64,000 bases of DNA, taken from IMG/VR virus record IMGVR_UViG_3300034073_003542, positions 1 through 64,000 of that record; one strand, given 5' to 3'. Every line of letters starts with the position of its first letter. The first letter of the stretch is position 1. This document shows positions 19,652 through 34,960 of the stretch, in pieces. A program made the translations under genes and the position numbers. The notes under the pieces were generated by a model. The model was given only the letters and a program-made list of their open reading frames with translations, was not told the origin of the DNA and did not search any database.

Positions 19652-22600
19652 ATGGCTAGTAAATTCAATCTAACAGCAGAACTTAATCTACGTGGACCAG
19701 CAAATCTACGTACTGTTGTAGCTGATATACGCCGTCAATTAAGTGGCGTAAAGGTTGATGTTGGCGTTAATGTTGCAAAAAATGCTGGTCGTAATATTGA
19801 CAATATAACAAATCGTCTAAATCAACTTAATGCCTCATTAGTACAAGCTCGCACTAGTACCGATCAACTAAACGCTTCTTTTGGTCAATTAGCGGCTATT
19901 GCTAGATCAATAGATACGGTCAATGTTAAAGCGTCTCAATCGACTAAACAACATGCTGACTCGATAAATCAAACAGCAAAAGCTGCTGCTGTAGCTTCTA
20001 GTAGAGTAGAAGAGTTTGGTAAGCAAAGCGCCCTTGCTATTAAGAGATTTGCGGCTTTTAGTTTACCTACTGTAACATTTTTTGCTTTAGGAAGAGCTGT
20101 TCAGTCTGGTATCGAGTCATTTATTGATTTTGATAAACAGATGGTAAAGTTGGAGCAGATCACTGGAAACACAAGAACTCAGCTAAAAAGTTTGAGCGGT
20201 GAAATAACTCGTCTTTCTACAACTATGGGTGTTAGTAGTTCAGAATTAGCTAAAGTCGCCGAAACCCTAGCTCAAGCTGGTTTGAGCGCAAAAGATACTA
20301 CTACTGCTCTTCAAGCTCTAGCTAAAACAGATTTAGCTCCATCATTTGATAATTTGACCCAAACAACAGAAGGCGCTATTGCTGCTATGCGTCAGTTTGG
20401 TTTAGAAGCCAAAGATTTAGAGCGAGCACTAGGATCTATTAATGCTGTTTCTGCTGCGTTTGCTGTTGAATCAGGAGACATTATCGCTGCTATTCAGCGT
20501 ACCGGTGGTGTATTTGCAAGCACAAGTAAGGGCGTAAGTGAAGGCACCGATGCTCTTAATGAGTTTGTTGCTGTGTTCACCAGCGTTCGTGCTACAACGC
20601 GTGAAAGCGCCGAGACAATTGCGACTGGTTTACGTACTATTTTTACGCGTATTCAAAGAGCTGGAACAATCAATCAATTAAAAGACTACGGCATTCAATT
20701 ACAAGACTTAGAAGGTAAATTCGTTGGACCTTATGAAGCAGTAAAGAGATTAAGCGAAGGACTCAAATCTCTCGATCCAAGAGATATTCGTTTCTCTAGC
20801 ATTATCGAAGAGCTTGGTGGATTTCGTCAAATTGGTAAAGTGTTGCCATTAATTCAACAATTTGCTACTGCTCAAGAAGCTCTTAAAGTAGCTCAAAGAG
20901 GACAAGGAAGTTTAACAGACGCCCAAATCAAGGCTCAACAAAGTCTTTCAAACCAATTTTCTAAAGTTCGCGAAAATTTCTTGGCTCTTATGAGAGATAT
21001 TGGTAATAGCACAGCTTTTCAAGGTTTAGCGAAAATTGTTTTGGTTCTATCAAATAGTTTAATTGGTTTAGTTGGGGCCTTTAAACCAGTACTACCTATT
21101 TTGGCTGTTATTGGAGCTATTAAGGGAATTAGCGCTATTGGCAGTTTTTCAAAAGGATTTTTTGGAAGTAAAAAACAAGCAAAGCCATCATTATTTGCTG
21201 GTGCAGCTGGCGAAGACCCAAAAGAAAAAGCTACGCGAGAAAGAAACGAAGCTACTGCTAGAGCAGCAGAAGCTTTAAGGATTAATACAGACGCCCTTAA
21301 TAAATTAACTGGCGCAATTACGGCCCTTGATGCTACTATTCAAAGTAGACCCACCTCAACTTTTAGTAAGGGTGGCAAGGTTCTTGGATTTAACACTGGT
21401 GGTATTGTTCCTGGTAATGGTGGTGGCGATAGAGTTCCAGCTCTTTTAGAGGGTGGTGAAGTAGTCATCAACAGAAGGGCTGCTCAAAGACATGGTAAGC
21501 ATAACATAAATAAATTAAATAGATATGCTTATGGAGGCTTAGTAGACGCCAATATTGTTAATAGTAATGATCAATATATTGGATTAAAAAAAAATGATGG
21601 GACAGCAAAAGAGGATACATTTGATATTAAAACTAAAAGACAATATATTACATTAAAAAATGTTGATAGATATGCTGGAAAAGCAATAGCAGATGGTGAA
21701 GTTGTTAACTTTGATGCTCAAGGATACAAACAAAGAGCCAAAACACCAGGATGGAAACAATTTGAACAAATAATTGAACAATTAGGATATAAAGACTTAA
21801 ACAAATCCACAAAGAGAAACAATTACCCCATTGACTTTACTAAAGGTGGTGAATGGTACGATGCAAAAAACGTATCCTCACCAGTTCCAGATAGGGAATT
21901 AGCAAGAAAGGCTTTACATCATATCTTAACGGAAACATATAAGAACTATGATTATCTCACACCACACAAAAAAATAAAAACTAGAGACGAAAACAGTCTA
22001 CTAAAATATACAAATAAACCTATTACTGTAGGTGGAGATGAGATTGAAGCCACTAGAACTATTACTCAACTTATTCCTAGATATGAAGTAGATAATAATC
22101 AAAAAAATATAGATAAAATACAGGGTGCTATAACTGGTACAAGTAAACAAAAAGGAACACTAAGTCGTAATGCCAATAAGGCTTTACAGCAAGATCTACA
22201 AGACTTACAAACAGATAATACAGTAGGAACATTAGGGGCGCGCAAAATATTATCAGCTAGTAATAGACTTAGTAGTAATTTTACATTAGGTGGATTAGTT
22301 CAAAGCTTTGCGGAAGGTGGTCGTATTGGATATATTGATTCAGACGTTATTAAAGAACAACTCGCTGGACCAAAAGAAAAATCTATAGTCGACGCTATGG
22401 CTAGTTTGGGATTAGGAAAAAATAAGAAAAAAGTAAATACTTATGTTGCAAAACTTATTGATTTAGCTAAATCTTCTCGTGGAGCAGAAGAAGCTTCTGT
22501 TAAGAAGTTGAGTGTGCTTTTTGGTTCTGCTGGTAGTGGCAAGTCTTCTATCCTAACAGGAGCAGCGGGTATTCCAGGAAGATCCCCTTTTACTGGAAGT

Positions 22601-25600
22601 AAACCAATTTTAACGCCTAAAGATATAGATGACGTAGAAGAAGTTGTAATAGCTACAAGTACAGTAACTCCAGATAAAATCAAGAGATTTATTTCTGATG
22701 CAGATGAAGTGTACGCTATTAGTGCTACGACACAAGCAGAACAAGAAAGAATTAAACAAAATAGAAAATCCAGAGATGAAACGGGATTAGGATCTTATGG
22801 GCGTAAAGCTGGGGCCACAAAAACCGCAAAAATTGATACTGTATTTGAAGAAGCTTTATTACTAGAACTACAACAACAAAATCAAGCGCGAGGCAAATCA
22901 CAAAAACTATCTATTTTTGGAAGAAGCGATAGCGATGAATTTAGAGAAAAAACTGGAACAGAACTACCTAGTTTTAGAAGAGAAAAAATTAGCATTGCGA
23001 GAGGTAGCTTTGGACCATTTACCGCTGGTCACGAATATCTACAACAATTTGCCCAAGAAGAATACGGAATCCCACCACAAGCTTTTGCTTATTTGGTTGC
23101 TCCAGACGAAGGAATAGATATTGGGCGAGAAATAACTAATCACGATATTAGAACAGCTATCTTAGATCAATCTATTCGTGAAGCTGTAGTTCAATTAACT
23201 TCTAGAAAAGGCAAGAGCTATAATGTTGGAGCTACTGGTCGTGGAGATAGAAGTATACCACAAGGAATAGAAATAACCAAATCTGGAGCAGCGCAAAGAT
23301 CGGTTCTATTACCTGGTGCCGGTAGCATCAATATTGTTTCTAAGGCTGATGCATCGGCTAAAAAATTAGCTAAACTAGAAAAAGCTTCCCAAGAAGCCGG
23401 ATATAAACTGGTGGATATTCCTCGATTTGAAGGTATTTCTGGATCGCAAGTTAGAGAAGCTATCGAAACTGGAGATCTAACCACTCTACAATATGCTCTT
23501 AATCCCACTTCATATGCTATAATGAAGAAAAATTTACAAAATATTCAAAATAGAATTAGGGCCGTTCCAGAATTAATTACCAAAAATAGAGCAACATTAA
23601 CATCAGAATTAGATCCAATAGACGAGAAGATTCGTGAACTAGGACCAGATCCAGCCAACTTCAAAGAAGTAAATGAGCTTAAAAACCAAAGATATGATAT
23701 CATATCATCATACTCATACTCTTTACATAAATCGTTACAAGAATTAGCTTCACAAGATCCAGTTAATTTTGCTATTGACACAAATATTTCCGACGAAGAA
23801 CTATCCTCTGCTCGACTAGATATAGCCAATAGAGCGCCCTTAAAACAAAGATCAATTGAAGAAGCGGTTTTAGCAACACAACCTAGAGTTTTAGCTGAAT
23901 CTGTTCCAGCTTTCGCAAACAAGAAGAAAAAAACTAGTACTGGTAGAGGTAGACAATATAATATAGAAAGAGAACCTACTTTAAATGAACTTCAAGATTC
24001 TTCTGGACCTTTTTCAGAACTAGCTCAGTTAACAGTTAAAGATCCACAAGAAGTTCAGGCTAAAATTAAAGACTGGCAAGAATTTGTAAAAAAAACTATT
24101 AGAGATGCTGGATTAGATGAATATGGTGGCTTTAAAGCTTTAGATGGAAATTCTGGTCCAGCAACTATTGCTAGTATTTTTGACCAAAAAGCAGGTAAAG
24201 CAAAACCAATAACAAAAAAAGTACCAATATTAGATCCAAACGGTAATCCTACCGGTAAATATCGAGATACAGGAGAAATAATTGGATATCAAAAATCTAA
24301 ATCAAAAAAGGGTCGCACAAAAGAAGATCAAGCAGTTATAGACGCTGTTATTAAAACAGCAAGAGAAGCTAGAGAAAAACTTGTTGACAAATACAAAGAA
24401 GGAAAAAGAGAGTCTTATAGCTTTATAAAGCCAGTAGATGCTACTGAAACATTAGATTTCAAAAAACAAGGACTATTATTTGCGGGAGTTGGTATTAATG
24501 GAGAGCCATATAGCCCAAAAAGATTATCTTTAGGCTCTGGTTTAGATGTTTTAGTTGGAGGATATATATTAAACGATAAAGATACTCGTAAAGAAATTGA
24601 ACAATATTCTGAAAACACAATAAGAGCAGAAAAAACAGCCGCAGAGAAAGGACAAGCTGGTGTGGCTGCGTCTTATCTAAAACGTGGTAAAAAATTAGCA
24701 CTAGATTTTGATAAAACATTAGTTACTGGAGCGGATCTTCATGGCGACGATTTAGATGCGTTTGCTGATATAGATAAAGTAAAGGCTAGTTTAGAAAATC
24801 CTCAAACTAAATTAACAATATTAGGAGAGAAATTAAGAAGAGTATTGGCTAGTCAAAAAGCTCAAGCTACAAAAACTGATTTATTATCTAGAATGAGAGT
24901 TGTAACAGCAAGACCTCATCATACTGTTGGAATTTTAGGAAATTGGTTAGCTCAACAAGGTATACCTATAACAGATATTAAGGGTGTTGGAGGAAAAGGA
25001 TTATCTGATCAACAAGTTGCAGAAGCTAAAGCCGCTTTATTAGATTTAGAGTCATTATTTATTGATGATAATGAAACTAATGTGAGAGTTGCCAAAGAAC
25101 AAGGCTTTAATGCAATTAGATATGGTGCTGCTGAATTCGACGAATCTGGAGAAAGATTACATAGAGGACAAGACGTTATTGAAGGACTATTTCTTCAAAA
25201 TATAATCAAAAGATTTAGCGGTAGACAAGCTGTTGGCGGAATCAATAATACTAGTATGGATTTTCCAACAGGGCTTGGATTAGCAGCAGAATTATTTCCT
25301 GGTTTAGATCCAGATATTCCCACAGACGCAAAAAGAACCTTACGTGGAGCCTCCGACTTAAAGAGTAATATTACAAATTATCTTAAGAAAGAAGGAAGAT
25401 TTAATACAAAATCAGTAGGAGCAGCGCAAGGTCAATTAGAGCCAGTTGGATTTGCTGGCGGAGGTATTGTTCAGCGATTTTCAAAAGCTGGACAAGTAGA
25501 TTACGATCCCAAAACTAAAAGAGTAATGAATATTCTTGGGAAAATTAAAAGTCCAACTGGAACAATAGATCCTAGCAAATTAAGTGAAGCTGAATTAGGT

Positions 25601-28600
25601 ATATTATCTAGTCTTGGCGGAACATCGCAAATAGGTTCTCGTTTATTCGAGGCTCCTGGTGTTGGAGAGATGAATAAATTTGTGAGAGAAAATGAAGCAG
25701 ACAGAGGAAGATACGCAGCTGAAATTAAGACCAAAAATGCTCCAGTAAGAGAATCTCGTGCAGCAGAACAAAGAGCCAGACGAGCAAGAAAAAGTGAAAT
25801 AAGGGAGATGAGTGAAACAAGACTCGCCCAAATGAATCTATTTGGTGGTATGACGGAACTAGATCCAGAAATTATCGAAGGTATTGATAAACCAAATCCA
25901 GAAGATATTTTTGGGGCTTTAAGAGAAGCTTTTGCTGAAACAACAGATAGAGGAAAAGCTTTAGCAGAAGAGGGTGGGGGATTTTTAAGTAAGTTCCGCG
26001 AAGGAATCAAAAAGAAAAAATTTATTTCTGCGACAGAATTCGTAGGAAGTTTACCTAATGCCGAAGAACAAATCAAGTCTGCTCGTAGAGAATTACAATC
26101 ACAGTCAGCCAGCACAAAAGATTCAAAAATACAAAAAAGTCTAGCGGATCAATTAGGAAAATCTTCTATAGGACTAGAAGAATTGGCTGCTTATCGTGGG
26201 GGTGCATTGCCAGCTAATGCTAGCAGAGCGACAAAATTTGCGTGGACAATGAGCCAAATGGTTGAAGGAGCTAATGAGTTAGCTAAAGGTGGAATAGTTG
26301 GATTTGCTAATGGAGGAAACGCAGATTATTATTCTTTAGAGAAGAATAGTGGGTTTAAATCTGGAGAGTTTGATGAATTAGTGCGATTTGCTAAAACTAA
26401 TGGATTCACATTGCCAGAATTTCAAAAATATTTAACAAAAAGACTAGCCGAGAAAAAAACTAATAGTCAGTTAATGATGGACCCATTACAATTGGCTCAA
26501 GCATTGATATCTCATACTCCAACGCCAACAGATGCCCAACGTAAATTAGCTGATTCATTAAAAGGAGGGCCAATAGACGCCCAATATAATCCTAAATATG
26601 ATAGGGTTGTTAAAGGTTTTGCTAGTGGTGGATTGGCCGAACACACAGACTCTATGGCTGGATTGATGCGCGACCTATATGGCAATAGATCAAGCGAAAC
26701 ACCAACCAAAAAACAAAAGAATTTTGGACAAATTGCCTTAAGAACAGGAAATAGAATACAAGCAAATTATTTTGACGGCCCCGATAGAACAGGTTATGTT
26801 ATAGCAGATAAAATGGGAGATATATTCGCTGTTCAATCCTCTTCAGCTACAAGTGGTTATGGTCCAAAGCTATACGATATTGTAATGGAAGCAGCTACAG
26901 AACAAGGTTCGATGCTTACATCTGACAGAAAAAGTGTAAGTAAAGAGGCTAAGGCTGTTTGGGACTATTATTTTAATAAAAGATCAGATGTTAAGAAAAT
27001 ACCATTAGATCCGATTGATTGGGTCTCTAATAACAGACTACTAGATGAAAAACTATATGGACCTCCAGATACATGGCCTCCATATAATGATCCTGCTTGG
27101 GTACTGCAAACAGGGTATCAAAAGAATCCGTCAGATATTAATAATCCAGACTTAGTCCAAAGATTAGCTATTGGTGGATCTGCCTCGTTTGCTAGTGGAG
27201 GAATAGTACCAGCCCGAGTATCAAACGGAGAAGGATTTGTTCCTCCTGCTCAAGCTAAGAGTATTGGATATGGCACCTTATCTAAAATGAATCAAGCAGA
27301 TCGTATTGGTGGATTTGCTAGTGGTGGAAGTATTAGCAGATTTAGTGGGCCAGGTAGCGGAACCAGTGACTCTATTGGGCCTGTTGGTCTACCAGTAGGA
27401 AGTTTTGTAATTCGTAAGAAGGCTATGGATGCTATGGGGTATGCTAAGGGAGGAGTTGTTGGATTAGCTGCTGGTGGTGTTTTAGATAAAGAAAGACTTG
27501 ATTATCTTGACTATTTAGCCAAAGAAAGAGGACAAACAGTAGCCCAATATCAAAGAGCAGAAGCTGGAAATGTAGTTAAAAGAGCTAATGAAATTCAATC
27601 AGAAAGCAAACAAGCTAAAAGAAATCTAACTCTGTTAGGAACATCACAAAGGAAAAATTTGGGCGGAGTTAATGTAGCGGCCACAATAAAAGCAGGCACA
27701 ACAGACGCTAATTTTGCAAAAGTAAATGCTGCTGTAGAAGCTTTTACTAATCAGATACAAAAAGCTGATCCAACACTATCTTACGATAAAGCTAGAGCTG
27801 CTGCTATAGGTATGGCAGATGCCTTGGCTAGAGGTGAGACCTCTGCTGATTCTGTAGCTGTAGCAAATAAGACTCTTAAAGGAAAATTAGATATAACTGT
27901 CACTAGCACTGAAGCCCTTATAAAAGCTGCCGATGATGCTGGTGTCGCTTTAGAAGACTTAGGGGCCGAAGTAACTACAGATGCTACTGGTAAGATAGTA
28001 GGTATTAAAAATAAAGGTTCGGCCTTAACAGATCAAGAATTTCTACAATCTCGTGCTGGGCAAAGATTTGGGGCGCTTGGAAATATACTACCAGCAAGAG
28101 CATTACAAGGATTTGCTGAATCTGGATTTGGTAAGGTGTTAGGTTCTGGTGCCGATTTTATTGAAGGTAAGAGCGGCGGAAGATTTGGTAACCTAAGTAG
28201 AGGTTTTGCTGCTCTTGGTGGATTTCAAGGAATAGGAACTGGATTAGCTGGAGCAAGTGAAGGAATTAAAAGCTTGTTGCCTGTTGGAGTTACTGATGAT
28301 CCCGGTATTGCTGGTACTTTTGGCGGATTAACTGGAGCTGGTACTGGAGCTGCTGTTGGAGCACAATTAGGTTCTTTTGCTGGTCCAATAGGAACATTAA
28401 TCGGAGGTATTGGTGGGGCTATCGTTGGTGGAATTAAAGGATATTTTGAAGCTAGTAATCAAGCAGTACTAAAAGGCGCTTTTGATAAACTTTCAAGCTC
28501 AACATCAAAACTAGACGACGCCTTTAAGCGTCTAGATAACGAATTTACTAAAGATAATTTTAGCGAAACAACAAAAACTTTACGACAAGTTGCCCAAGAC

Positions 28601-31600
28601 AATGTAGCTATCGGTAAAATAGCTACTGAGGAAAAAACTTTTAGTAATTATTTTACAAGACCAAGCGATGCTGTAAGACAAGAAGCTCTAACAGGCTTTA
28701 TATCTCAATCAAGAAATATAGCTACATCAAACGTTAAACTTGGACAAATACAAGCATCCAAATTAGCAACAACAGGCCAATTGGATAATGCAAGCTTTAG
28801 TCCTATTTTAGAGCAGTTTGCTACGCAAGATCAGAAAAACGAAGCGGCAGTTTCTGCATATGTAGCTAAGATGTCAGAAGCTGGAGCAAGCGAAGAACAA
28901 ATAGGGAAAATACTAACAACAAATAGAACACTAGCTATTAAAAAAGGTCTAGAGTTTATCGCAGCAGAAGACGCCCTTATCAAAAAGAATGAACTTACAG
29001 TAAGGGGAATAAAAGAAGTAGAAAGAGCCACATTTAGATTATTAGATGTTTATAGAAAAGCAGGAGCCAACGCCCAAAGATACGGAGACGAACTAGAAAA
29101 TGTTACAAATCGTATTGCTGGATATATAGGAGATTTAACTGGTGCCGCGCAGCTACAAAACGTCAATAGAGAAAATGAACAGGTATTTGCTAATATATCA
29201 GCATATTCAAAAGATGAAATTCGCGCCGCAGCCGAGCAAGTTTCTGGGTTTTCTGGAAATACGCCAGAAACAAAAGAATTAGCTGGGCAAGCAATAGTTG
29301 CCAAAGTATTAACAGATGAATTACCTGGATTGATTTCTAGATCTGGTGGAGATAAAGGAGAAATAATTAAAGGACTAACAGCCGCTTTTGAGGCACAAGG
29401 AATTAAGGGTAGAGGAGTTAATGAAATATTAAGTCAAATTGAAAAAGTCATTGATGACAATAACGATAAAGGAACAGGCTCTGGATCTCTACTAGAAGAT
29501 TTAGATAAGAGTGGGGTTTACACAAAAGCGTCCAAAACTGCCGAAGAAGCAGTTAAGACACTAGGAACCCTGCAAAAACAATACAATGATACCTTGCAAA
29601 AACTTATTGATTTTTCAAACCAAAGAAACCAAATCATACTTAAACAGAACGGCCTATTACGCAAAGCAGAACAAACTAGACTTAAAGCAGAATTAGAACT
29701 AGCTGATGTTTTAGGTAAGAGTATATCATTAGATAAACTTAATAAGCCGTTCGAGACCGAAATAAAATCTCTAACTTCTAGTATTGCTGGCGCTGGATTT
29801 TTAGATGGGGAAACATTAGATCCAACAAAAATTGGACAAGCTATACAAGGAGCTGCTTCTAGAAATAAGGATTTAGAGCAAGCTATTCTTAATGAAAAAG
29901 CACAGTTCAATAATGCTACTACAGAAGAACAAAAAAATCAAATTAATCAAAATATTAGAGGATTCCAAGAAGAACTAGCTAAGAATAAATTAGGGATTAC
30001 AGAAGCAACAGAAGCTCTAGAAAAATTGGCTGACGACGGAACTCGTGCCGCTAATGCTTTAACTAAAATTCAAGAAAAGCAACAAAGAGGTAAAGCTACT
30101 ACAGATAAGATTTTTGAAGCTTTTACATTAGATCCACAACAAGTAATAGAGCGTAATTTTCAAGCCGGTATTTTAGGAAACATACTAAGTGGAGACAGAA
30201 CAGCCCTAGCTACTTCACAAGGTCGTGGTGCTGCTGTTGCTGGATTAGAACAATTTAATGGAATATTACCAAAACAACTATATAATGAATTAAGATCGCA
30301 GTTATTAGAAGCATTTTTAAGATCCACTGGGGGATTAACAGAAGCACAAATTCAACAACAGGTTGAGTCTGTGAAAAATGAGGGCATCGACCCAAATGAT
30401 CCTTTAATTCAAGCTTATAAAGAAGCTTCTAGCAATTCTATTGATGCTATGAATGCTTTAAGGCTATCACAAGATGCAGCAAGAGAAGAACTTACTAAAG
30501 AAATGAGAAATTTGAGCATTAGCTTAAATGGAGTTGGAAATATATTTCAAGGAGCCTTAGGTAGTTCACGCGGACCTGCTCCAGACGAAAAGGCTAGTGG
30601 TGGTAGAATTAGATTATCTAAAGGAGGTAAAGCTGTTCCTGTTAGAGTTTCTAATGGAGAAGGTGTTTTTAACCGAGCAGAAGCTGCAAAAATAGGATAT
30701 AGTAGACTTCAAAAAATGAACCATGCTGATAAAAATGGGCACCAGTATGATGGAGATATTAATCGGTTCAATGGTCCTGGTACTGGAACTAGTGATAGCA
30801 TATTTACACAATTAGAGGAAGGCAGTTATGTTATTAGAGCTAAGGCAATGGAGGCTATGCAGACAGCAGCTAATGGTGGTAAAATTCAAAGATTAGGTGT
30901 CGGCGGAATTACAATTAATGGAAATTATTATCCGGCTAGCGATAAAGAAAACGAATGGAATCCAGAAAAAGAATTAGCAGAAATAAATAGAAGAGCAGAA
31001 GAGCGACAAAAAGAAGCAACTAATAGAAAAGCCGATTACGATAAACAGATGGTTGAAAGATTTGGAACAAAAGAAGATCGTGAGGCCTCTAGAGTAGAAG
31101 CACAAAGAAAGAAAGCCGATGCACAAGCTAGATTAGATGAGGCAACAGCAAAAAGAGAGGCTTCTATTCAGGCTCTTTTAAATCCTGTTCAGGTTTCTGA
31201 AACAAGAACACCAGAAGAAATACAAACAGTAATCAACAATAGAGCTAAACAAATTGAAGATAGATTAACACAAGAAAGAAAAGGTAGAAGCTTGGCCTTA
31301 AAGGGCTTAGATCCTAATTATGAACAGCTAAAAGCAGATAATGCGCCAGCAACAGCAATAGGTAAGCTTAGAATATCGGACAATTTAAAAACTTTTGAAT
31401 CACTAGTGAATGAAGGAGATGAATTAGCGATATACGCTAAGAAATTTGGTCTAGAATCAGCTTTTAGAAAAGAAATAGAAAATAGATATAAATATTCTAA
31501 TAATTTGCCTAGTCGTAGAACTAGATCTATAATACGAGATAAAGACGGAAAAAATCCAGAGTATGTGACCTCTGATAAAACTGAGATACGAAATATTTTA

Positions 31601-34600
31601 AGAAAATTATTTAATGAAAGAATGCGAGCAGAACGAGAAGCTGATCGTAAAGTTCAAGAAGCTAATCCTAATTTAAACAAAAATAATTTCTTAGTTGGTC
31701 TTAAAGCTGCTGGCGAAAATTTAGCTAACAATCCAGTAGCAGGAGCACTAAATAGAGGATATAGAGGAACTATTGGGGCGGGCTTAAATGCTATAGGGGG
31801 CGGACTTGGAACTCTTGTTGGTTTAGGAGCCAAAGGATTAGGATTTAATGATTTTGGAAACGATCTAGTTGAAAGAAGTGGCAACTTAATAGGTGCAGCG
31901 GGAAGAGATGTTATAGACATTTTTAATGCAGATAGACATCAAGCCCAAGGAAGAAATCTTTTAAATCTTTTACAGGGTAATTTTAATTTTGAAGAACAAA
32001 CCAAAACATTTACTGATCAACAACTAGAAAAAAATGTACAAGATTCTGGAAGTTTGGCCCCATTTACCCAGGCCGCACAATTAACATCTGATATTGCCGG
32101 AGGATCATTGTTTGATTCTGGTAATGTGGTTAAAAAATTGGCAACTAGATCCGTATCTAATCTTGGTGAGATTGCTACTAATGTTGGTAAAAGAATAGCA
32201 AGAAATCCATATGTATCTAGAGGAGTACAAAACGCATATAATATATCTGCTAAATATACAGATTTTGTCTCTGGTTTGGGGCCAAATTTAATTAATAGCG
32301 GGAAAAGAAGTATAGCTAATTTTCCTAATGTAATAGGTAAAATAGGTACTTTTACTAAAGATATTGTTGGAGATATCCAACCATTAGATTATTTAAGATA
32401 TATACAAAATAGTATTTCTAATAAAAGTAAAAATATAACAGACACAATCTATAATAAAGTTCCACAATTTGTTAAACAGTTTATAGAAGACCAAAAAAAT
32501 AAAATAAATTTTACTAGACAAAATTTTAAACTACCAAAATTACCACAAAAAAATACGGTATCAAAATCTTTAACTTTTAAAGAAGTTACTGCTAGTGGAT
32601 TTGCTAACTCTGGTGATGCGTTTGAAGCTAGTAATAGATTAAGAGAAGCTCAGTTAAAAGCCAGAGATATTATAGCCGAATATGCAAGTTCTCCAGAAAA
32701 AGCTAGAGAGCTTTTATCTAAAAATAATTTATTTGACGTTGACGTTTTAGAACTAGATCCATCTTTAAGTCAGAAAGTTAATGCTCTTTCAGGAAAAACT
32801 GGTGGGATTGGAGCACAATATTCTCCAATCAATAAAGCTGTTACTATACCTAAAAAAGATTCAGGAATGGGATTACTGATTCATGAAATATTACACGCTT
32901 TTCAACATAATGTCGGAATAGCGTCTAACGCAAAAGATCCTTTTAGATTTTTACAAGCTAAATCTTTAAGCGGAACAAAAGCGTTAAGAAAACAAATGGA
33001 AGATTTTTTGCAACCAGGAGGAGCATATGAAAAATTAGTTTCTGATTTACGCGGAAATGCTAATGGTGCTGGGTTTTATGATAGTAAGAAAATTTTAGAT
33101 CAAGGAAATTTTGAGTTACTTACTAATTTGGGTCAAGCTGCTGATACTGACGCTTTTAAGAATAATCAAGCAGCACAAGACATGTTAAAAGCTATTATAA
33201 AACATATGGGATTCAAGAATGGAGGTCCAGTATACGCTAACTCAGGCGGATTAATGAGCAAATTCTTTAAGCCAAAGGGGGCAGACAAGATTCCAGCTAT
33301 GCTTTCTGAGGGAGAGTATGTTATTAATCCAAAAGCTACTAAAGAAAATTTTAGGTTATTAGAGGCTATAAATAATAATAAAGTAGGTTCCTATAATAAG
33401 GGAGGATTAATTGAAGAGCTTGAAAATCAAGGAAGAGAATACGTAGACAGAGAAATTGATGCTGACGATAGATATCAAATCGCATCTAATTTTCATATAT
33501 TTCAAAGAGAAGGAACAACAAAAGATAATTTACTACAGCTCGCCGCACGCGCTGCTTCAAATAGAAGAGACAAAACCAACGAAGCGCTTAATAATCCACG
33601 AGGTATTCCTTGGGAAGAGTTATCAGACAAAGAAAGAGACGAATTAATAAAACCAGAATTAGATCGTCTTAATTCAATTGCAAACGAATATCAACAAAAT
33701 CCAGAAGAATTCAAAAAGAATAATACGTTTCAAAATTTTTCAGACGCTCTAGATACAAGAATTAATCATGGTGAGTTAGTCAGACTCGCCAAAGAAAAAG
33801 GAACAGATAATTTAGAAGAGACTGCTGGTCAAGCTGGCAAAATGGGTGTTGCTGGATTTGGGCTGGAAAAGGGCTATAAAAAAACAAAAGAGCGTGGAAC
33901 ATTTGATAGACCAAGATTACCTACTAGACAAAAACAAGAAGAGTCGGCACCACAGACTACTTTACAATCCTCATCCGTACAAAATAGTCAACCTTTACCA
34001 AAAGTTAAGCCTAAGTCTATGTCTGAATTTTTTGGAGTAAAAAATATTACTCCAGAAAAAATGCCGTCATACAAAGAAAGAAAAGCACAACAAGCAACTA
34101 ATACTAAACAAAATATTCATAGTCAAGCAGCGAAAAATCCAAAAAGTTTAGCTGGATCTAGATCAAATCTAATTAAAAAAGCCGAAGCAGAAAAACAAGC
34201 ACGAAAAGATAGGGCGGCAGAAAGAATTCGAGAAAAAGTAAAATTAGGTACAGCAACAGCAAATCAACAAGAAATATTAAGTACGTATGATAATCAACAA
34301 AAATATGGATCTCCTGAAGCTCAAGCTCAATTAGCTCAAGGAATACAATCAATTCAAAATACAGGATCTTTTATTGGCGGCATGGCCTCTAATTTATATT
34401 CTGGAGCAAGTAATGCTGTTGCGTCTGCTGGATCTATGTTTGGACAAAATAAACCAGCGACACAAAGAGGTCTTCAGACTCCTACATCTCCAATACCAAT
34501 AGCTTCAGCTACTAAATCCTCTACATCAACAACATTAGCTAATTCTACTCCGATTCCTGCTTCTGGTACTGTATCTCCAGACGCATCAACCGCTAGTGCC

Positions 34601-34960
34601 AGTGCTTCCTCAATAGATATTTCTGGTTTAACTAGTGCTTTTGATATATTTGGTAAACATGTTGCTACTTTTGGAGAACATGTTAATACTTTTGGAACAC
34701 ATACTACTGCGTTTGGTGGATATGTTGATAAACTTCAGACAGCTATTACCGATGCTAAAATTGAGCTTGTAGGAAATTATAAGGTTGACGTTAATATAAC
34801 TGGAGCAGAAAGTATTGGAAAACTAGAAGAAAAAATGAAGGAGTGGGCTACAGAAATTGTAACTTCAAAAGTCAATGAGTTACAATCAAAAGTATCTGAT
34901 GCAACACGCGGAGCGGTAAAGCCTCCAGCCACACAAGGAAAAACTAATAAAGAAAGATAA
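19652..34960 (+). CDS. Giant tape measure protein (5102 aa) with inserted enzyme domains
   Basis: N-terminal TP901-type TMP region (FDKQMVKLEQITG...LAQAGLS...GLRTIFTRI), hydrophobic Gly-rich segments and DxVPAxLxxGExV motifs. Internal P-loop, TAGH nucleotidyltransferase, HAD, GNAT and HExxH motifs. Confidence 0.9.
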   Translation: MASKFNLTAELNLRGPANLRTVVADIRRQLSGVKVDVGVNVAKNAGRNIDNITNRLNQLNASLVQARTSTDQLNASFGQLAAIARSIDTVNVKASQSTKQHADSINQTAKAAAVASSRVEEFGKQSALAIKRFAAFSLPTVTFFALGRAVQSGIESFIDFDKQMVKLEQITGNTRTQLKSLSGEITRLSTTMGVSSSELAKVAETLAQAGLSAKDTTTALQALAKTDLAPSFDNLTQTTEGAIAAMRQFGLEAKDLERALGSINAVSAAFAVESGDIIAAIQRTGGVFASTSKGVSEGTDALNEFVAVFTSVRATTRESAETIATGLRTIFTRIQRAGTINQLKDYGIQLQDLEGKFVGPYEAVKRLSEGLKSLDPRDIRFSSIIEELGGFRQIGKVLPLIQQFATAQEALKVAQRGQGSLTDAQIKAQQSLSNQFSKVRENFLALMRDIGNSTAFQGLAKIVLVLSNSLIGLVGAFKPVLPILAVIGAIKGISAIGSFSKGFFGSKKQAKPSLFAGAAGEDPKEKATRERNEATARAAEALRINTDALNKLTGAITALDATIQSRPTSTFSKGGKVLGFNTGGIVPGNGGGDRVPALLEGGEVVINRRAAQRHGKHNINKLNRYAYGGLVDANIVNSNDQYIGLKKNDGTAKEDTFDIKTKRQYITLKNVDRYAGKAIADGEVVNFDAQGYKQRAKTPGWKQFEQIIEQLGYKDLNKSTKRNNYPIDFTKGGEWYDAKNVSSPVPDRELARKALHHILTETYKNYDYLTPHKKIKTRDENSLLKYTNKPITVGGDEIEATRTITQLIPRYEVDNNQKNIDKIQGAITGTSKQKGTLSRNANKALQQDLQDLQTDNTVGTLGARKILSASNRLSSNFTLGGLVQSFAEGGRIGYIDSDVIKEQLAGPKEKSIVDAMASLGLGKNKKKVNTYVAKLIDLAKSSRGAEEASVKKLSVLFGSAGSGKSSILTGAAGIPGRSPFTGSKPILTPKDIDDVEEVVIATSTVTPDKIKRFISDADEVYAISATTQAEQERIKQNRKSRDETGLGSYGRKAGATKTAKIDTVFEEALLLELQQQNQARGKSQKLSIFGRSDSDEFREKTGTELPSFRREKISIARGSFGPFTAGHEYLQQFAQEEYGIPPQAFAYLVAPDEGIDIGREITNHDIRTAILDQSIREAVVQLTSRKGKSYNVGATGRGDRSIPQGIEITKSGAAQRSVLLPGAGSINIVSKADASAKKLAKLEKASQEAGYKLVDIPRFEGISGSQVREAIETGDLTTLQYALNPTSYAIMKKNLQNIQNRIRAVPELITKNRATLTSELDPIDEKIRELGPDPANFKEVNELKNQRYDIISSYSYSLHKSLQELASQDPVNFAIDTNISDEELSSARLDIANRAPLKQRSIEEAVLATQPRVLAESVPAFANKKKKTSTGRGRQYNIEREPTLNELQDSSGPFSELAQLTVKDPQEVQAKIKDWQEFVKKTIRDAGLDEYGGFKALDGNSGPATIASIFDQKAGKAKPITKKVPILDPNGNPTGKYRDTGEIIGYQKSKSKKGRTKEDQAVIDAVIKTAREAREKLVDKYKEGKRESYSFIKPVDATETLDFKKQGLLFAGVGINGEPYSPKRLSLGSGLDVLVGGYILNDKDTRKEIEQYSENTIRAEKTAAEKGQAGVAASYLKRGKKLALDFDKTLVTGADLHGDDLDAFADIDKVKASLENPQTKLTILGEKLRRVLASQKAQATKTDLLSRMRVVTARPHHTVGILGNWLAQQGIPITDIKGVGGKGLSDQQVAEAKAALLDLESLFIDDNETNVRVAKEQGFNAIRYGAAEFDESGERLHRGQDVIEGLFLQNIIKRFSGRQAVGGINNTSMDFPTGLGLAAELFPGLDPDIPTDAKRTLRGASDLKSNITNYLKKEGRFNTKSVGAAQGQLEPVGFAGGGIVQRFSKAGQVDYDPKTKRVMNILGKIKSPTGTIDPSKLSEAELGILSSLGGTSQIGSRLFEAPGVGEMNKFVRENEADRGRYAAEIKTKNAPVRESRAAEQRARRARKSEIREMSETRLAQMNLFGGMTELDPEIIEGIDKPNPEDIFGALREAFAETTDRGKALAEEGGGFLSKFREGIKKKKFISATEFVGSLPNAEEQIKSARRELQSQSASTKDSKIQKSLADQLGKSSIGLEELAAYRGGALPANASRATKFAWTMSQMVEGANELAKGGIVGFANGGNADYYSLEKNSGFKSGEFDELVRFAKTNGFTLPEFQKYLTKRLAEKKTNSQLMMDPLQLAQALISHTPTPTDAQRKLADSLKGGPIDAQYNPKYDRVVKGFASGGLAEHTDSMAGLMRDLYGNRSSETPTKKQKNFGQIALRTGNRIQANYFDGPDRTGYVIADKMGDIFAVQSSSATSGYGPKLYDIVMEAATEQGSMLTSDRKSVSKEAKAVWDYYFNKRSDVKKIPLDPIDWVSNNRLLDEKLYGPPDTWPPYNDPAWVLQTGYQKNPSDINNPDLVQRLAIGGSASFASGGIVPARVSNGEGFVPPAQAKSIGYGTLSKMNQADRIGGFASGGSISRFSGPGSGTSDSIGPVGLPVGSFVIRKKAMDAMGYAKGGVVGLAAGGVLDKERLDYLDYLAKERGQTVAQYQRAEAGNVVKRANEIQSESKQAKRNLTLLGTSQRKNLGGVNVAATIKAGTTDANFAKVNAAVEAFTNQIQKADPTLSYDKARAAAIGMADALARGETSADSVAVANKTLKGKLDITVTSTEALIKAADDAGVALEDLGAEVTTDATGKIVGIKNKGSALTDQEFLQSRAGQRFGALGNILPARALQGFAESGFGKVLGSGADFIEGKSGGRFGNLSRGFAALGGFQGIGTGLAGASEGIKSLLPVGVTDDPGIAGTFGGLTGAGTGAAVGAQLGSFAGPIGTLIGGIGGAIVGGIKGYFEASNQAVLKGAFDKLSSSTSKLDDAFKRLDNEFTKDNFSETTKTLRQVAQDNVAIGKIATEEKTFSNYFTRPSDAVRQEALTGFISQSRNIATSNVKLGQIQASKLATTGQLDNASFSPILEQFATQDQKNEAAVSAYVAKMSEAGASEEQIGKILTTNRTLAIKKGLEFIAAEDALIKKNELTVRGIKEVERATFRLLDVYRKAGANAQRYGDELENVTNRIAGYIGDLTGAAQLQNVNRENEQVFANISAYSKDEIRAAAEQVSGFSGNTPETKELAGQAIVAKVLTDELPGLISRSGGDKGEIIKGLTAAFEAQGIKGRGVNEILSQIEKVIDDNNDKGTGSGSLLEDLDKSGVYTKASKTAEEAVKTLGTLQKQYNDTLQKLIDFSNQRNQIILKQNGLLRKAEQTRLKAELELADVLGKSISLDKLNKPFETEIKSLTSSIAGAGFLDGETLDPTKIGQAIQGAASRNKDLEQAILNEKAQFNNATTEEQKNQINQNIRGFQEELAKNKLGITEATEALEKLADDGTRAANALTKIQEKQQRGKATTDKIFEAFTLDPQQVIERNFQAGILGNILSGDRTALATSQGRGAAVAGLEQFNGILPKQLYNELRSQLLEAFLRSTGGLTEAQIQQQVESVKNEGIDPNDPLIQAYKEASSNSIDAMNALRLSQDAAREELTKEMRNLSISLNGVGNIFQGALGSSRGPAPDEKASGGRIRLSKGGKAVPVRVSNGEGVFNRAEAAKIGYSRLQKMNHADKNGHQYDGDINRFNGPGTGTSDSIFTQLEEGSYVIRAKAMEAMQTAANGGKIQRLGVGGITINGNYYPASDKENEWNPEKELAEINRRAEERQKEATNRKADYDKQMVERFGTKEDREASRVEAQRKKADAQARLDEATAKREASIQALLNPVQVSETRTPEEIQTVINNRAKQIEDRLTQERKGRSLALKGLDPNYEQLKADNAPATAIGKLRISDNLKTFESLVNEGDELAIYAKKFGLESAFRKEIENRYKYSNNLPSRRTRSIIRDKDGKNPEYVTSDKTEIRNILRKLFNERMRAEREADRKVQEANPNLNKNNFLVGLKAAGENLANNPVAGALNRGYRGTIGAGLNAIGGGLGTLVGLGAKGLGFNDFGNDLVERSGNLIGAAGRDVIDIFNADRHQAQGRNLLNLLQGNFNFEEQTKTFTDQQLEKNVQDSGSLAPFTQAAQLTSDIAGGSLFDSGNVVKKLATRSVSNLGEIATNVGKRIARNPYVSRGVQNAYNISAKYTDFVSGLGPNLINSGKRSIANFPNVIGKIGTFTKDIVGDIQPLDYLRYIQNSISNKSKNITDTIYNKVPQFVKQFIEDQKNKINFTRQNFKLPKLPQKNTVSKSLTFKEVTASGFANSGDAFEASNRLREAQLKARDIIAEYASSPEKARELLSKNNLFDVDVLELDPSLSQKVNALSGKTGGIGAQYSPINKAVTIPKKDSGMGLLIHEILHAFQHNVGIASNAKDPFRFLQAKSLSGTKALRKQMEDFLQPGGAYEKLVSDLRGNANGAGFYDSKKILDQGNFELLTNLGQAADTDAFKNNQAAQDMLKAIIKHMGFKNGGPVYANSGGLMSKFFKPKGADKIPAMLSEGEYVINPKATKENFRLLEAINNNKVGSYNKGGLIEELENQGREYVDREIDADDRYQIASNFHIFQREGTTKDNLLQLAARAASNRRDKTNEALNNPRGIPWEELSDKERDELIKPELDRLNSIANEYQQNPEEFKKNNTFQNFSDALDTRINHGELVRLAKEKGTDNLEETAGQAGKMGVAGFGLEKGYKKTKERGTFDRPRLPTRQKQEESAPQTTLQSSSVQNSQPLPKVKPKSMSEFFGVKNITPEKMPSYKERKAQQATNTKQNIHSQAAKNPKSLAGSRSNLIKKAEAEKQARKDRAAERIREKVKLGTATANQQEILSTYDNQQKYGSPEAQAQLAQGIQSIQNTGSFIGGMASNLYSGASNAVASAGSMFGQNKPATQRGLQTPTSPIPIASATKSSTSTTLANSTPIPASGTVSPDASTASASASSIDISGLTSAFDIFGKHVATFGEHVNTFGTHTTAFGGYVDKLQTAITDAKIELVGNYKVDVNITGAESIGKLEEKMKEWATEIVTSKVNELQSKVSDATRGAVKPPATQGKTNKER

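Follow-up and report, generated by a model that had tools for sequence, protein, structure and literature searches.

Do the motifs of a kinase, a nucleotidyltransferase and a phosphatase, read from within a phage tape-measure protein (TMP), mark working enzymes, and if so what could these enzymes do? The window analysed here, 64,000 nt covering positions 1-64,000 (one strand) of IMG/VR record IMGVR_UViG_3300034073_003542, comes from a phage genome of roughly 210 kb and contains a plus-strand ORF, 19652..34960, encoding a giant TMP of 5102 aa. The protein is recognised by a PF10145 match at its N-terminus (E 1.4e-25) and by at least seven TMP PHROGs matching aa 27-640, and it has a glycine-zipper hydrophobic segment at about aa 2864-2938. 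Its conserved N-terminal domain (aa 1-570; 19652..21361, +) marks the phage lineage, with 318 relatives in IMG/VR, 50-65% identity to 39 homologues and a mean column identity of 68%. One GNAT-like and one HExxH domain are also found in the protein.

An earlier note had placed six enzyme motifs in one cassette of this TMP, and all six are indeed in frame within the uninterrupted ORF: the Walker A motif GSAGSGKS (aa 958; 22523-22546), GSFGPFTAGH (aa 1118; 23003, with TAGH at 23021-23032), ISGSQVR (aa 1262; 23435-23455), ALDFDKTL (from aa 1683 and nt 24698, nt 24704 being the first catalytic Asp, D1685), VVTAR (aa 1750; 24899) and FIDDNETN (from aa 1803 and nt 25058, with D1805 at 25064). The borders proposed for the cassette, 22322 and 25450, fall at Gly-rich linkers visible in the translation, ..GGLVQSFAEGG.. 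upstream (aa 880-895; 22289..22336, +) and ..GFAGGGIVQRFSKAG.. downstream (aa 1934-1950; 25451..25501, +). Model and alignment place the invariant GYIDxD that follows the upstream linker already within the kinase fold. The whole 3,129-nt cassette recurs with 100% identity in an independently assembled IMG/VR record, where the open frame is 5,105 aa. The motif set is far beyond chance, because the expected folds are confidently predicted, the motif residues are invariant in sets of 67 and 49 homologues, and the independent assembly is identical.

Homologues of the cassette (113 matches at 50% clustering) lie nearly all in proteins of 2,000-7,800 aa with a PF10145 N-terminus, the short proteins among them being partial ORFs. 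They were seen only within giant TMPs of one lineage, in soil and subsurface metagenomes, and the literature searched yielded no published description of such TMP enzyme cassettes.

Structure prediction and Foldseek searches, proposed in the earlier note for each domain, returned the expected folds, and models and structural matches agree on all three of its domain identities: a P-loop kinase type, a nucleotidyltransferase of the CoaD/NadD/cytidylyltransferase superfamily with the T/HxGH...ISxTxxR signatures, and a complete HAD phosphatase. The AF2 model of aa 891-1400 has a pLDDT of 92.1 and a pTM of 0.89, and a fixed two-domain unit is therefore predicted: a zeta-toxin-like P-loop kinase (K; aa 891-1106; 22322..22969, +) packs onto a HIGH-type nucleotidyltransferase that has a helical sub-domain at its C-terminus (NT; aa 1107-1393; 22970..23830, +). 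The best structural matches of K are zeta toxin 6epg_B (Z 9.4 over 162 residues) and AvrRxo1 4z8q (Z 7.1), and no other kinase ranks among the top matches; Foldseek ranks zeta toxin 6epi_F second, and language-model features put K near Zeta_toxin/AAA_33 clusters (0.89). These relatives, which are kinases acting on UDP-sugars and NAD, share with K a conserved Walker A and a downstream acidic residue, but K has no sequence-level membership of their families and is always fused to a nucleotidyltransferase. The HAD module (aa 1600-1933; pLDDT 89.8) opens with a three-stranded sheet and a long helix (aa 1600-1676; 24449..24679, +; pLDDT 88-96), kept with it in many homologues, and continues with a core (aa 1677-1827; 24680..25132, +) predicted to be a DxDxT HAD phosphatase, with motif I DFDKT (24704-24718), motif II T1752-A-R (24899-24913), motif III K1793 (25028-25030) and motif IV DD (25064-25069). 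A conserved end-piece (aa 1838-1925; 25163..25426, +; invariant G1845, D1870, G1874, L1875 and K1894) closes the cassette. Found in 21 of 26 related records, this end-piece follows nearly every complete HAD core, and it also occurs after HAD-less K-NT cassettes or before K.

Loss of the catalytic residues in homologues had been named beforehand as the outcome that would tell against these identities. Instead, those of K-NT are all invariant in 67 homologues: the GK of Walker A, D991 (22622-22624), D1018 further on and the lid residue R1051 (22802-22804) in K, and G1126, H1127, S1263 and R1268 in NT. All four HAD motifs are likewise kept in 49 sequences, with D1685, D1687, R1754, K1793, D1805 and D1806 invariant; homologues in both sets are 26-41% identical. 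We consider it highly probable that active enzymes are embedded in the TMP. The copy in the window is nevertheless atypical at five near-invariant positions (D974I, R979P, R983S, K1234A and Y1242L, family residue first), three in a poorly modelled kinase loop and two in NT, and these substitutions count against the explanation that we favour below.

The cassette had also been proposed as a single three-enzyme module, and this did not hold. Among 116 representative proteins, K-NT occurs alone in 49, HAD alone in 35, and the two together in 20; a further 11 records, mostly short partial ORFs, have only K or only NT. In all 69 proteins bearing both K and NT, NT comes immediately after K, and TMPs with K-NT do not carry HAD more often (20/69) than TMPs sampled by their N-terminus alone (11/26). 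Kinase and nucleotidyltransferase thus form a near-obligate fused pair, and HAD is an independent, separately mobile module. Between them, the stretch of aa 1394-1599 (23831..24448, +) is of low complexity, the K-NT model ending at aa 1400, and phmmer found no match to aa 1400-1600 in the 116 relatives.

Kinase plus HAD is the RNA end-healing pairing of T4 Pnkp, and kinase plus NMN adenylyltransferase is that of NadR; the earlier note had invoked both. In these proteins the Pnkp pairing does not form an obligate unit, because HAD is distributed independently of K-NT. T4 Pnkp and bacterial Pnkp1 (of the Pnkp1/Rnl/Hen1 RNA-repair complex) do have a DxDxT motif and a P-loop kinase in the same polypeptide, and the three top VIA matches of the HAD core are their 3'-phosphatases (T4 Pnkp 5uj0_B, Z 11.6; Pnkp1 4xrp_A, Z 11.0; T4 Pnk 1ltq, Z 10.0), with non-Pnkp matches at Z 9.1 or less and 5uj0_A as the best Foldseek match (E 2.4e-4). 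However, neither K nor HAD is a Pnkp member by sequence (HAD aligns over 23 columns, E 0.03; K shares the P-loop only), the cassette kinase and phosphatase are parted by NT and some 290 further residues, and the cassette HAD has the extra N-terminal sheet and helix as well as the end-piece.

The affinities of NT are divided. PF16581 matches at 32 bits against a cut-off of 26.7, and PF01467 matches 26 of the 67 family members. By structure, PPAT is the single best match (Z 12.9), next to NadD (12.7) and NMNAT (12.3-12.4), and TmcAL aligns over 207-215 residues, C-terminal helices included. The strongest PDB match of the NT profile is 3gmi (MJ0951, UPF0348; E 4e-8), over the ISGT motif and the helices that follow; with PF16581, with the CitC-family models that gave the nearest shapes in the ESM Atlas, and with AFDB clusters labelled 'citrate lyase ligase C-terminal domain' that span both domains (query residues 2-404), this points to acetate-activating enzymes of the CitC/TmcAL type as possible relatives. 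That match is nonetheless limited to the C-terminal half of NT, the N-terminal half being closer to PPAT and NadR. Scores from hhalign are equal for NadR (32.4), CoaD (33.0) and CitC (31.5; 78 columns, E 6.3e-4), but the CoaD match is confined to the N-terminal half and that of CitC to the C-terminal half. NMNATs of the NadR type alone align with the profile across the full catalytic domain: the phage NadR-like 9x6f (Bas30_86) covers profile positions 11-160 of 198 (E 2e-6), and E. coli NadR 147 columns (E 5.5e-4), a weak similarity with an hhalign probability of 30%.

NadR stands as the best functional analogy, and membership of its family is rejected: the domain order is reversed, the cassette having its kinase first, and K shares only the P-loop with the ribosylnicotinamide kinase of NadR. 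What the cassette has in common with NadR is that a single polypeptide holds both a P-loop kinase and an adenylyltransferase of the HIGH type, and a phage precedent exists in Bas30_86, the NARP3 enzyme that rebuilds NAD+ against an NAD+-depleting defence (PDB 9X6F/9X6H; PMC13464706). The cassette differs further in its setting, part of a virion tail protein instead of the product of a free early gene, and no PnuC partner accompanies it.

We propose that the cassette comprises two catalytically competent units built into the TMP. The first (aa 891-1393) would most likely act on a single small substrate of nucleotide type in two successive steps, each dependent on ATP: the zeta-toxin-like kinase would phosphorylate this substrate and the HIGH-motif nucleotidyltransferase would then adenylylate the new phosphate, an order of reactions suggested by the logic of NadR (NR -> NMN -> NAD+), reached here with another kind of kinase and with the two domains in reverse order. 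This two-step logic is the best-fitting mechanism by analogy; a substrate of the NAD type is our leading guess, and a doubtful one. The second unit (aa 1600-1925) would be an independently shuffled DxDxT HAD phosphomonoesterase, with a core closest to the 3'-phosphatase domains of polynucleotide kinase-phosphatases, followed by the end-piece. The genome context does not discriminate between candidate chemistries. The phage carries an apparent NARP1 pair (Nampt-like and Prs-like genes), an Rnl-type RNA ligase and RtcB, and no PnuC-like transporter; in G022, a complete relative, K-NT and HAD occur without Nampt, RNA ligase or RtcB.

The phosphatase core invites a reading as an RNA or DNA end-healing kit, which we regard as unlikely. 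K would phosphorylate 5'-OH ends and HAD strip 3'-phosphates, as in T4 Pnkp and Pnkp1, while NT would act on RNA, by adenylylating 5'-phosphates or by a TmcAL-like tRNA modification, so countering anticodon nucleases at the moment of entry. The three best matches of the HAD core, all polynucleotide 3'-phosphatases, agree with it, as does the Zeta_toxin/AAA_33 neighbourhood of K, to which the T4 Pnk kinase presumably also belongs; the best sequence match of NT is to the UPF0348/TmcAL family, which acts on tRNA, and TmcAL extends over its C-terminal helices. Among the phage genes, moreover, the Rnl-type RNA ligase and RtcB occur without any Pfam-recognisable PNK kinase or PNK3P phosphatase. Against this, the kinase and the phosphatase are unlinked and have no significant sequence relation to T4 Pnkp, we know of no HIGH-type nucleotidyltransferase that adenylylates RNA ends, and the TMP HAD does not track RNA ligase, which occurs in two of 26 relatives, one with HAD in its TMP and one without; G022 has both modules and neither ligase nor RtcB.

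Other small-molecule chemistry is rather improbable, though less so than end healing. NT could be a PPAT paired with a 3'-kinase, giving CoA, and PPAT leads the structural matches, CoaD has the hhalign score of 33.0, and NT has the TxGH motif of PPAT. It could instead be a ligase of the CitC/TmcAL kind that adenylylates carboxylates, with a kinase as its partner, as the ESM Atlas and AFDB shapes and the CitC alignment would suggest. Or K, with zeta toxin and AvrRxo1 as the only kinases near the top of the structural matches, could poison the host by 3'-phosphorylating a UDP-sugar, or NAD made by NT, and so arrest its metabolism. Yet neither CoaD nor CitC matches the whole of NT in sequence, PF06414 and PF08218 are not in the 25 families most often matched by members, the gain for a phage from injected CoA synthesis is unclear, and a toxin leaves the constant K-NT fusion unexplained.

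TMPs exit the tail during infection, and the enzymes of the proposed two-unit cassette would therefore reach the host as pre-made protein, before expression of any phage gene. Delivery would require folded domains of about 500 aa to fit the lumen of the tail tube, which is unlikely, and this difficulty favours a role in the producing cell or the virion (tail modification or assembly), or as silent structural spacers that lengthen the TMP; the neighbour genes are uncharacterised. We nonetheless judge such roles very improbable. Catalytic residues that stay invariant across homologues of 26-41% identity argue for retained catalysis, and cassettes that are optional, mobile (the start of K ranges from aa 14 to aa 2016) and quicker to diverge than the N-terminal domain (26-41% identity, compared with 50-65%) fit conflict-type cargo better than structural parts. 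Any anti-defence role is conjectural. The explanation as a whole, combining TMP-borne enzymes, kinase-then-adenylyltransferase logic and delivery into the host, is tentative, and we rate it somewhat short of an even chance.

The nearest parallel lies in the polyvalent proteins of phages and conjugative elements, huge virion-associated proteins that string together unrelated enzymatic domains and presumably act at the very start of infection (Iyer et al. 2017, PMC5512222). GNAT-like and HExxH domains, typical of that class, are both carried by this TMP. A term search of that article returned no passage on a HIGH-type nucleotidyltransferase, a P-loop small-molecule kinase or a HAD phosphatase, and no occurrence of 'tape measure'. 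The present cassettes differ in their TMP carrier, their Gly-rich linkers and their recurrent end-piece. If its enzymes are delivered, this TMP would be a tail-borne counterpart to the injected effectors of the polyvalent class.

A single uninterrupted open reading frame (ORF) of 5,102 aa (19652..34960, + strand) spans the whole cassette (22322-25450) and is a phage tail tape-measure protein (TMP). Its N-terminus matches PF10145 (E 1.4e-25), at least seven TMP PHROGs align over aa 27-640 (phrog_28, E 3.7e-30), and a glycine-zipper hydrophobic segment lies downstream (E 5e-5). An earlier note had proposed a kinase, nucleotidyltransferase and HAD phosphatase module within this protein; the six motifs that it listed are all present and in frame on the + strand: GSAGSGKS at aa 958, GSFGPFTAGH at aa 1118, ISGSQVR at aa 1262, ALDFDKTL at aa 1683 (the coordinate quoted being that of the first Asp, D1685), VVTAR at aa 1750 and FIDDNETN at aa 1803 (quoted at D1805). 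The borders assigned to the cassette match two Gly-rich linkers (aa 880-895 and aa 1934-1950). The source record is a 209,847-bp IMG/VR virus rated complete by CheckV, and the 3,129-nt cassette recurs with 100% identity in an independently assembled 159,970-bp record, where the open frame has 5,105 aa; it was found in subsurface and soil metagenome runs. Gene order around the TMP is uninformative on the tail block, because the large neighbouring ORFs have no Pfam or PHROG match apart from one of 854 aa. The latter (window 6812-9376) precedes the tail genes and has a domain of the FGE-sulfatase (formylglycine-generating-enzyme-like) type (E 3e-11).

With aa 891-1933 as query, an exhaustive HMMER search matched 113 proteins clustered at 50% identity, nearly all of them 2,000-7,800 aa long; the few short ones are incomplete ORFs from short contigs, and each bears the name 'hypothetical protein'. 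Two blocks, aa 891-1380 and aa 1600-1916, can be separated among the matches. When sub-domains were mapped on 116 relatives, also clustered at 50% identity, a P-loop kinase domain (K, aa 891-1106) directly preceded a HIGH-type nucleotidyltransferase domain (NT, aa 1107-1393) in all 69 proteins having both; 11 more records had only K or only NT, the majority being short partial ORFs. K-NT occurs without the HAD module in 49 proteins, HAD without K-NT in 35, and both together in 20. Nor is HAD enriched with K-NT, being present in 20 of the 69 K-NT-bearing TMPs against 11 of 26 TMPs sampled by their N-terminus only. K-NT is a near-obligate fusion, predicted to form a single rigid body, and HAD is a module independent of it.

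The position at which K starts ranges from aa 14 to aa 2016 of the TMP, and identity among homologues is 26-41% in K-NT versus 50-65% in the TMP N-terminus; on these sequence comparisons the cassettes thus resemble inserts that move about and evolve fast within a conserved carrier. After nearly every complete HAD core comes a conserved end-piece of about 85 aa (aa 1838-1925; window 25163-25426), which also terminates K-NT cassettes devoid of HAD and sometimes sits ahead of K. This end-piece, in which G, D, GL and K are invariant, occurs in 21 of 26 related TMPs and may have a role in cleavage, in docking or in folding. Neither the cassette DNA nor a tblastn search gave a match among 50,697 phage records, and a PHROGs scan of the cassette gave none. 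An NT-only profile retrieved no stand-alone NT relative at E <= 1e-3; a K-NT profile extended to E <= 10 returned no stand-alone K-NT relative, only UvrA P-loop noise; and a pattern search derived from the K-NT alignment and keyed on Walker A found two loci only. In the searches made here, K-NT and HAD were found in giant TMPs of one lineage only, a lineage with 318 relatives in IMG/VR.

An AlphaFold2 model of K-NT (aa 891-1400), built with homologue alignments, reached a pLDDT of 92.1 and a pTM of 0.89. Its NT part (model residues 220-410) superimposes on PPAT (4nah, Z 12.9), NadD (2h29, Z 12.7), NadM (Z 12.4) and archaeal NMNAT (1f9a, Z 12.3), and also on NadR (Z 10.2) and TmcAL (Z 10.1, C-terminal helices included); Foldseek gave a probability of 1.00 to the matches with the PPAT/NMNAT-type fold. 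The two signatures are strictly kept, with G1126 and H1127 of TAGH (aa 1124-1127) and S1263 and R1268 of ISGSQVR (aa 1262-1268) found in 67/67 sequences, as are R1167, R1176, R1258 and R1301. The window's NT scores 32.0-32.7 bits against PF16581 (cut-off 26.7), a family matched by 60 of the 67 members, and PF01467 is matched by 26 of 67 (best E 5.5e-7). NT is a bona fide HIGH-signature (class I aaRS-like) nucleotidyltransferase.

At the level of subfamily, the sequence evidence is split. Among solved structures, the best match of the NT profile is MJ0951/UPF0348 (E 4e-8), limited to the ISGT motif and the next helix, and the sole whole-domain match is 9X6F (E 2e-6), the structure of Bas30_86, the NadR-like enzyme with which the phage NARP3 pathway rebuilds NAD+ (PMC13464706). 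A comparison by hhalign with four Escherichia coli enzymes produced no clear winner: NadR aligned over the whole domain (score 32.4, 147 columns, E 5.5e-4, probability 30%), CoaD over the N-terminal half (33.0, 56 columns), CitC over the C-terminal half (31.5, 78 columns) and NadD at the C-terminal end (19.6, 31 columns). Searched by shape, the ESM Atlas and the AFDB clusters gave CitC-family proteins as first matches, some of them aligned over K and NT both.

The kinase domain (model residues 1-216) is closest in fold to zeta toxin (Z 9.4) and AvrRxo1 (Z 7.1). Language-model features lead to Zeta_toxin/AAA_33 clusters (0.89, a lead only), and PF06414 is outside the 25 Pfam families most often matched by K-NT members. 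Invariant K residues in the 67 sequences are G958, G963 and K964 of Walker A, D991, D1018 and R1051; D991 is a candidate for the catalytic Asp that kinases of this type have after strand 2. The NadR pairing named in the earlier note serves as an analogy, and K-NT is not a member of that family by its kinase: NadR has an NMNAT followed by a C-terminal RNK kinase, whereas K is N-terminal, has zeta toxin and AvrRxo1 as structural neighbours, and shares with the NadR kinase the P-loop alone (20 columns aligned by hhalign, nothing more). The window's own copy deviates at five near-invariant family positions. D974I, R979P and R983S (family residue first) fall in the post-Walker A loop (aa 971-987, window 22562-22612), the sole poorly modelled stretch, and K1234A and Y1242L fall in NT. 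With its loop lacking the family's D, R and R, this K copy may have an altered or weakened acceptor site.

For the HAD module (aa 1600-1933), AlphaFold2 gave a pLDDT of 89.8 and a pTM of 0.77. The three best matches of its core (model residues 78-228) were the T4 Pnkp phosphatase (Z 11.6), Pnkp1 (Z 11.0) and full-length T4 Pnk (Z 10.0), against Z <= 9.1 for generic HADs, and the Foldseek ranking agrees on Pnkp phosphatase as top match; most of the structures matched are HADs. D1685, F1686, D1687, A1753, R1754, K1793, D1805 and D1806 are invariant in 49/49 sequences, T1689 is present in 48/49, and residue 1752 is either T or S throughout. With all four superfamily motifs and a Rossmannoid core, the module belongs to the HAD phosphatase superfamily. 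No Pfam HAD model matched any of the 49 members at E 0.1 or better, the hhalign alignment of the HAD profile with T4 Pnkp (23 columns, E 0.03) was not significant, and PF08645 had no match in the phage genome. The analogy with T4 Pnkp drawn in the earlier note is retained for the HAD fold, and abandoned for kinase homology, as the alignment of K with the T4 Pnk kinase is confined to the P-loop, and for coupling: kinase and phosphatase are joined in T4 Pnkp and Pnkp1, whereas K and HAD are distributed independently (49 versus 35 proteins with one unit alone). That same note had held that its proposal would fall if the catalytic residues varied among homologues; they are invariant in 67 K-NT and 49 HAD sequences. 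Both enzyme units of the cassette have kept their active sites intact and are under purifying selection.

Because the kinase is always fused to an alpha-phosphate nucleotidyltransferase, the most economical scheme for K-NT would take a single nucleotide-type substrate through two successive ATP-dependent steps. NadR provides the known precedent for such logic, to which K-NT would have come with another kinase and with its domains in reverse order. On this scheme, and with the whole-domain matches to NadR and Bas30_86, a NAD-type substrate is the leading guess, though less likely than not. The fold and profile matches that spread to PPAT and CoaD, to CitC and TmcAL, and, for the kinase, to zeta toxin and AvrRxo1 point elsewhere: a PPAT/CoA-type reaction, a CitC/TmcAL-type acyl-adenylation or a zeta/AvrRxo1-type poisoning, which, taken jointly, we consider slightly less likely still; the CoaD and CitC alignments each cover half of NT. 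RNA end-healing would agree with the Pnkp-like fold of HAD, and we judge it unlikely, K and HAD lacking the coupling seen in T4 Pnkp.

The rest of the genome did not discriminate between these readings. Outside the window, a Nampt-like gene (NAMPT_N and NAPRTase), a NADAR-domain gene and a PRPP-synthetase (Prs)-like gene adjoin, NADAR in the middle (G000:C1:108564-112148 of the source genome; locus L003 8564-12148), an arrangement whose Nampt-like and Prs-like members resemble the NARP1 NAD+-reconstitution pair, Namat and Adps. An IMPDH/GMP-reductase gene lies near this cluster. An RNA-repair-flavoured cluster, also outside the window (G000:C1:160695-170409, locus L004), holds an Rnl-type RNA ligase with a PHA02142 OB domain and RtcB. 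A calcineurin-like phosphoesterase (metallophosphoesterase) and a thymidine kinase belong to it too, and two LAGLIDADG homing-endonuclease-like ORFs are interspersed among these genes. At the Pfam level, the phage genome has no CTP_transf_like, AAA_33, PNK3P, NUDIX or PnuC gene. Reading the Nampt-like gene, with no Pfam-level NMNAT elsewhere, as support for a NAD role was rejected, because this gene, two genes from the Prs-like one, is placed as in the NARP1 pathway, which requires no NMNAT (PMC13728456), and Nampt occurs in 0 of 26 large related records, among them the only one bearing K-NT (G022, complete, 238 kb). The parallel argument for a repair role, from an RNA ligase and RtcB with no PNK, was also rejected, because ligase presence among relatives does not go with HAD: RNA ligase occurs in 2/26 records, one with and one without HAD, and full HAD in 11/26, while G022 carries K-NT and HAD and lacks Nampt, RNA ligase, RtcB and PnuC. 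A PnuC partner as in NARP3 is lacking too: the source genome, G022 and a further record (G028) have no PnuC-like transporter.

The same TMP carries other candidate cassettes. Language-model features place aa 2330-2510 (window 26639-27181) in phage-only clusters at 0.95, some with GNAT acetyltransferase families (a lead only), and this GNAT-like cassette recurs in many related giant TMPs. A second region (aa 4300-4530, window 32549-33241), with HEILH at aa 4411 (32882-32896), has features that weakly match phage 'peptidase family', M90 and lethal-factor-like clusters (peptidase-like, 0.89, a lead only) and is shared by just 2 of the 116 relatives; it may be a zincin metallopeptidase hub typical of polyvalent proteins. 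Because both regions share the TMP with K-NT and HAD, the protein resembles, in its multi-domain make-up, the injected proteins that Iyer et al. (PMC5512222) call polyvalent; their article has no mention of tape-measure proteins, and a search of its terms gave no passage on the K, NT or HAD domain types. Like those proteins, the enzymes would be delivered together with the TMP when a cell is infected. The family's commonest repeated element is a repeat of about 100 aa with GPG(S/T)GTSDSI and ..VSNGEG.., present in 2-3 copies here (window 27347-27376 and 30773-30802, lying within the units aa 2510-2610 and aa 3655-3755, and a shorter related stretch at aa 4520-4590) and in up to eight in relatives.

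Taken as a whole, these features would be compatible with a scenario that we regard as speculative and, in its entirety, rather unlikely. In a widespread lineage of large soil/subsurface siphophages, the giant TMP would be a modular delivery vehicle with swappable cassettes bounded by linkers and end-pieces (K-NT, found nowhere else, a Pnkp-like phosphatase, GNAT-like and metallopeptidase-like units), so that finished enzymes would enter with the TMP at DNA injection. K-NT would then act as a convergent NadR-like synthase of NAD+, or of another dinucleotide, pre-empting NAD-depleting immunity before phage transcription.

Injected multi-enzyme proteins as a concept and phage NadR-like counter-defence have been described before; what is new, as a variant of these, is the carrier, together with its domain families and the way its cassettes are organised. 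The full-text literature searches made here yielded no description of kinase, nucleotidyltransferase or HAD domains in tape-measure proteins. Two enzyme families unnamed in public sources ('hypothetical protein') are identified, with 77 and 68 matching proteins among 116 relatives. The finding also raises a physical puzzle, namely the storage in, and exit from, the tail tube of a 5,000-residue TMP with folded domains of 300-500 aa. If confirmed, the cassettes would offer a ready set of components for protein cargo that phage tails deliver. To our knowledge, the known phage routes of NAD+ rebuilding (NARP1-3) and RNA repair depend on gene expression after entry; a pre-made enzyme borne by the tail would act earlier, when abortive-infection systems fire.
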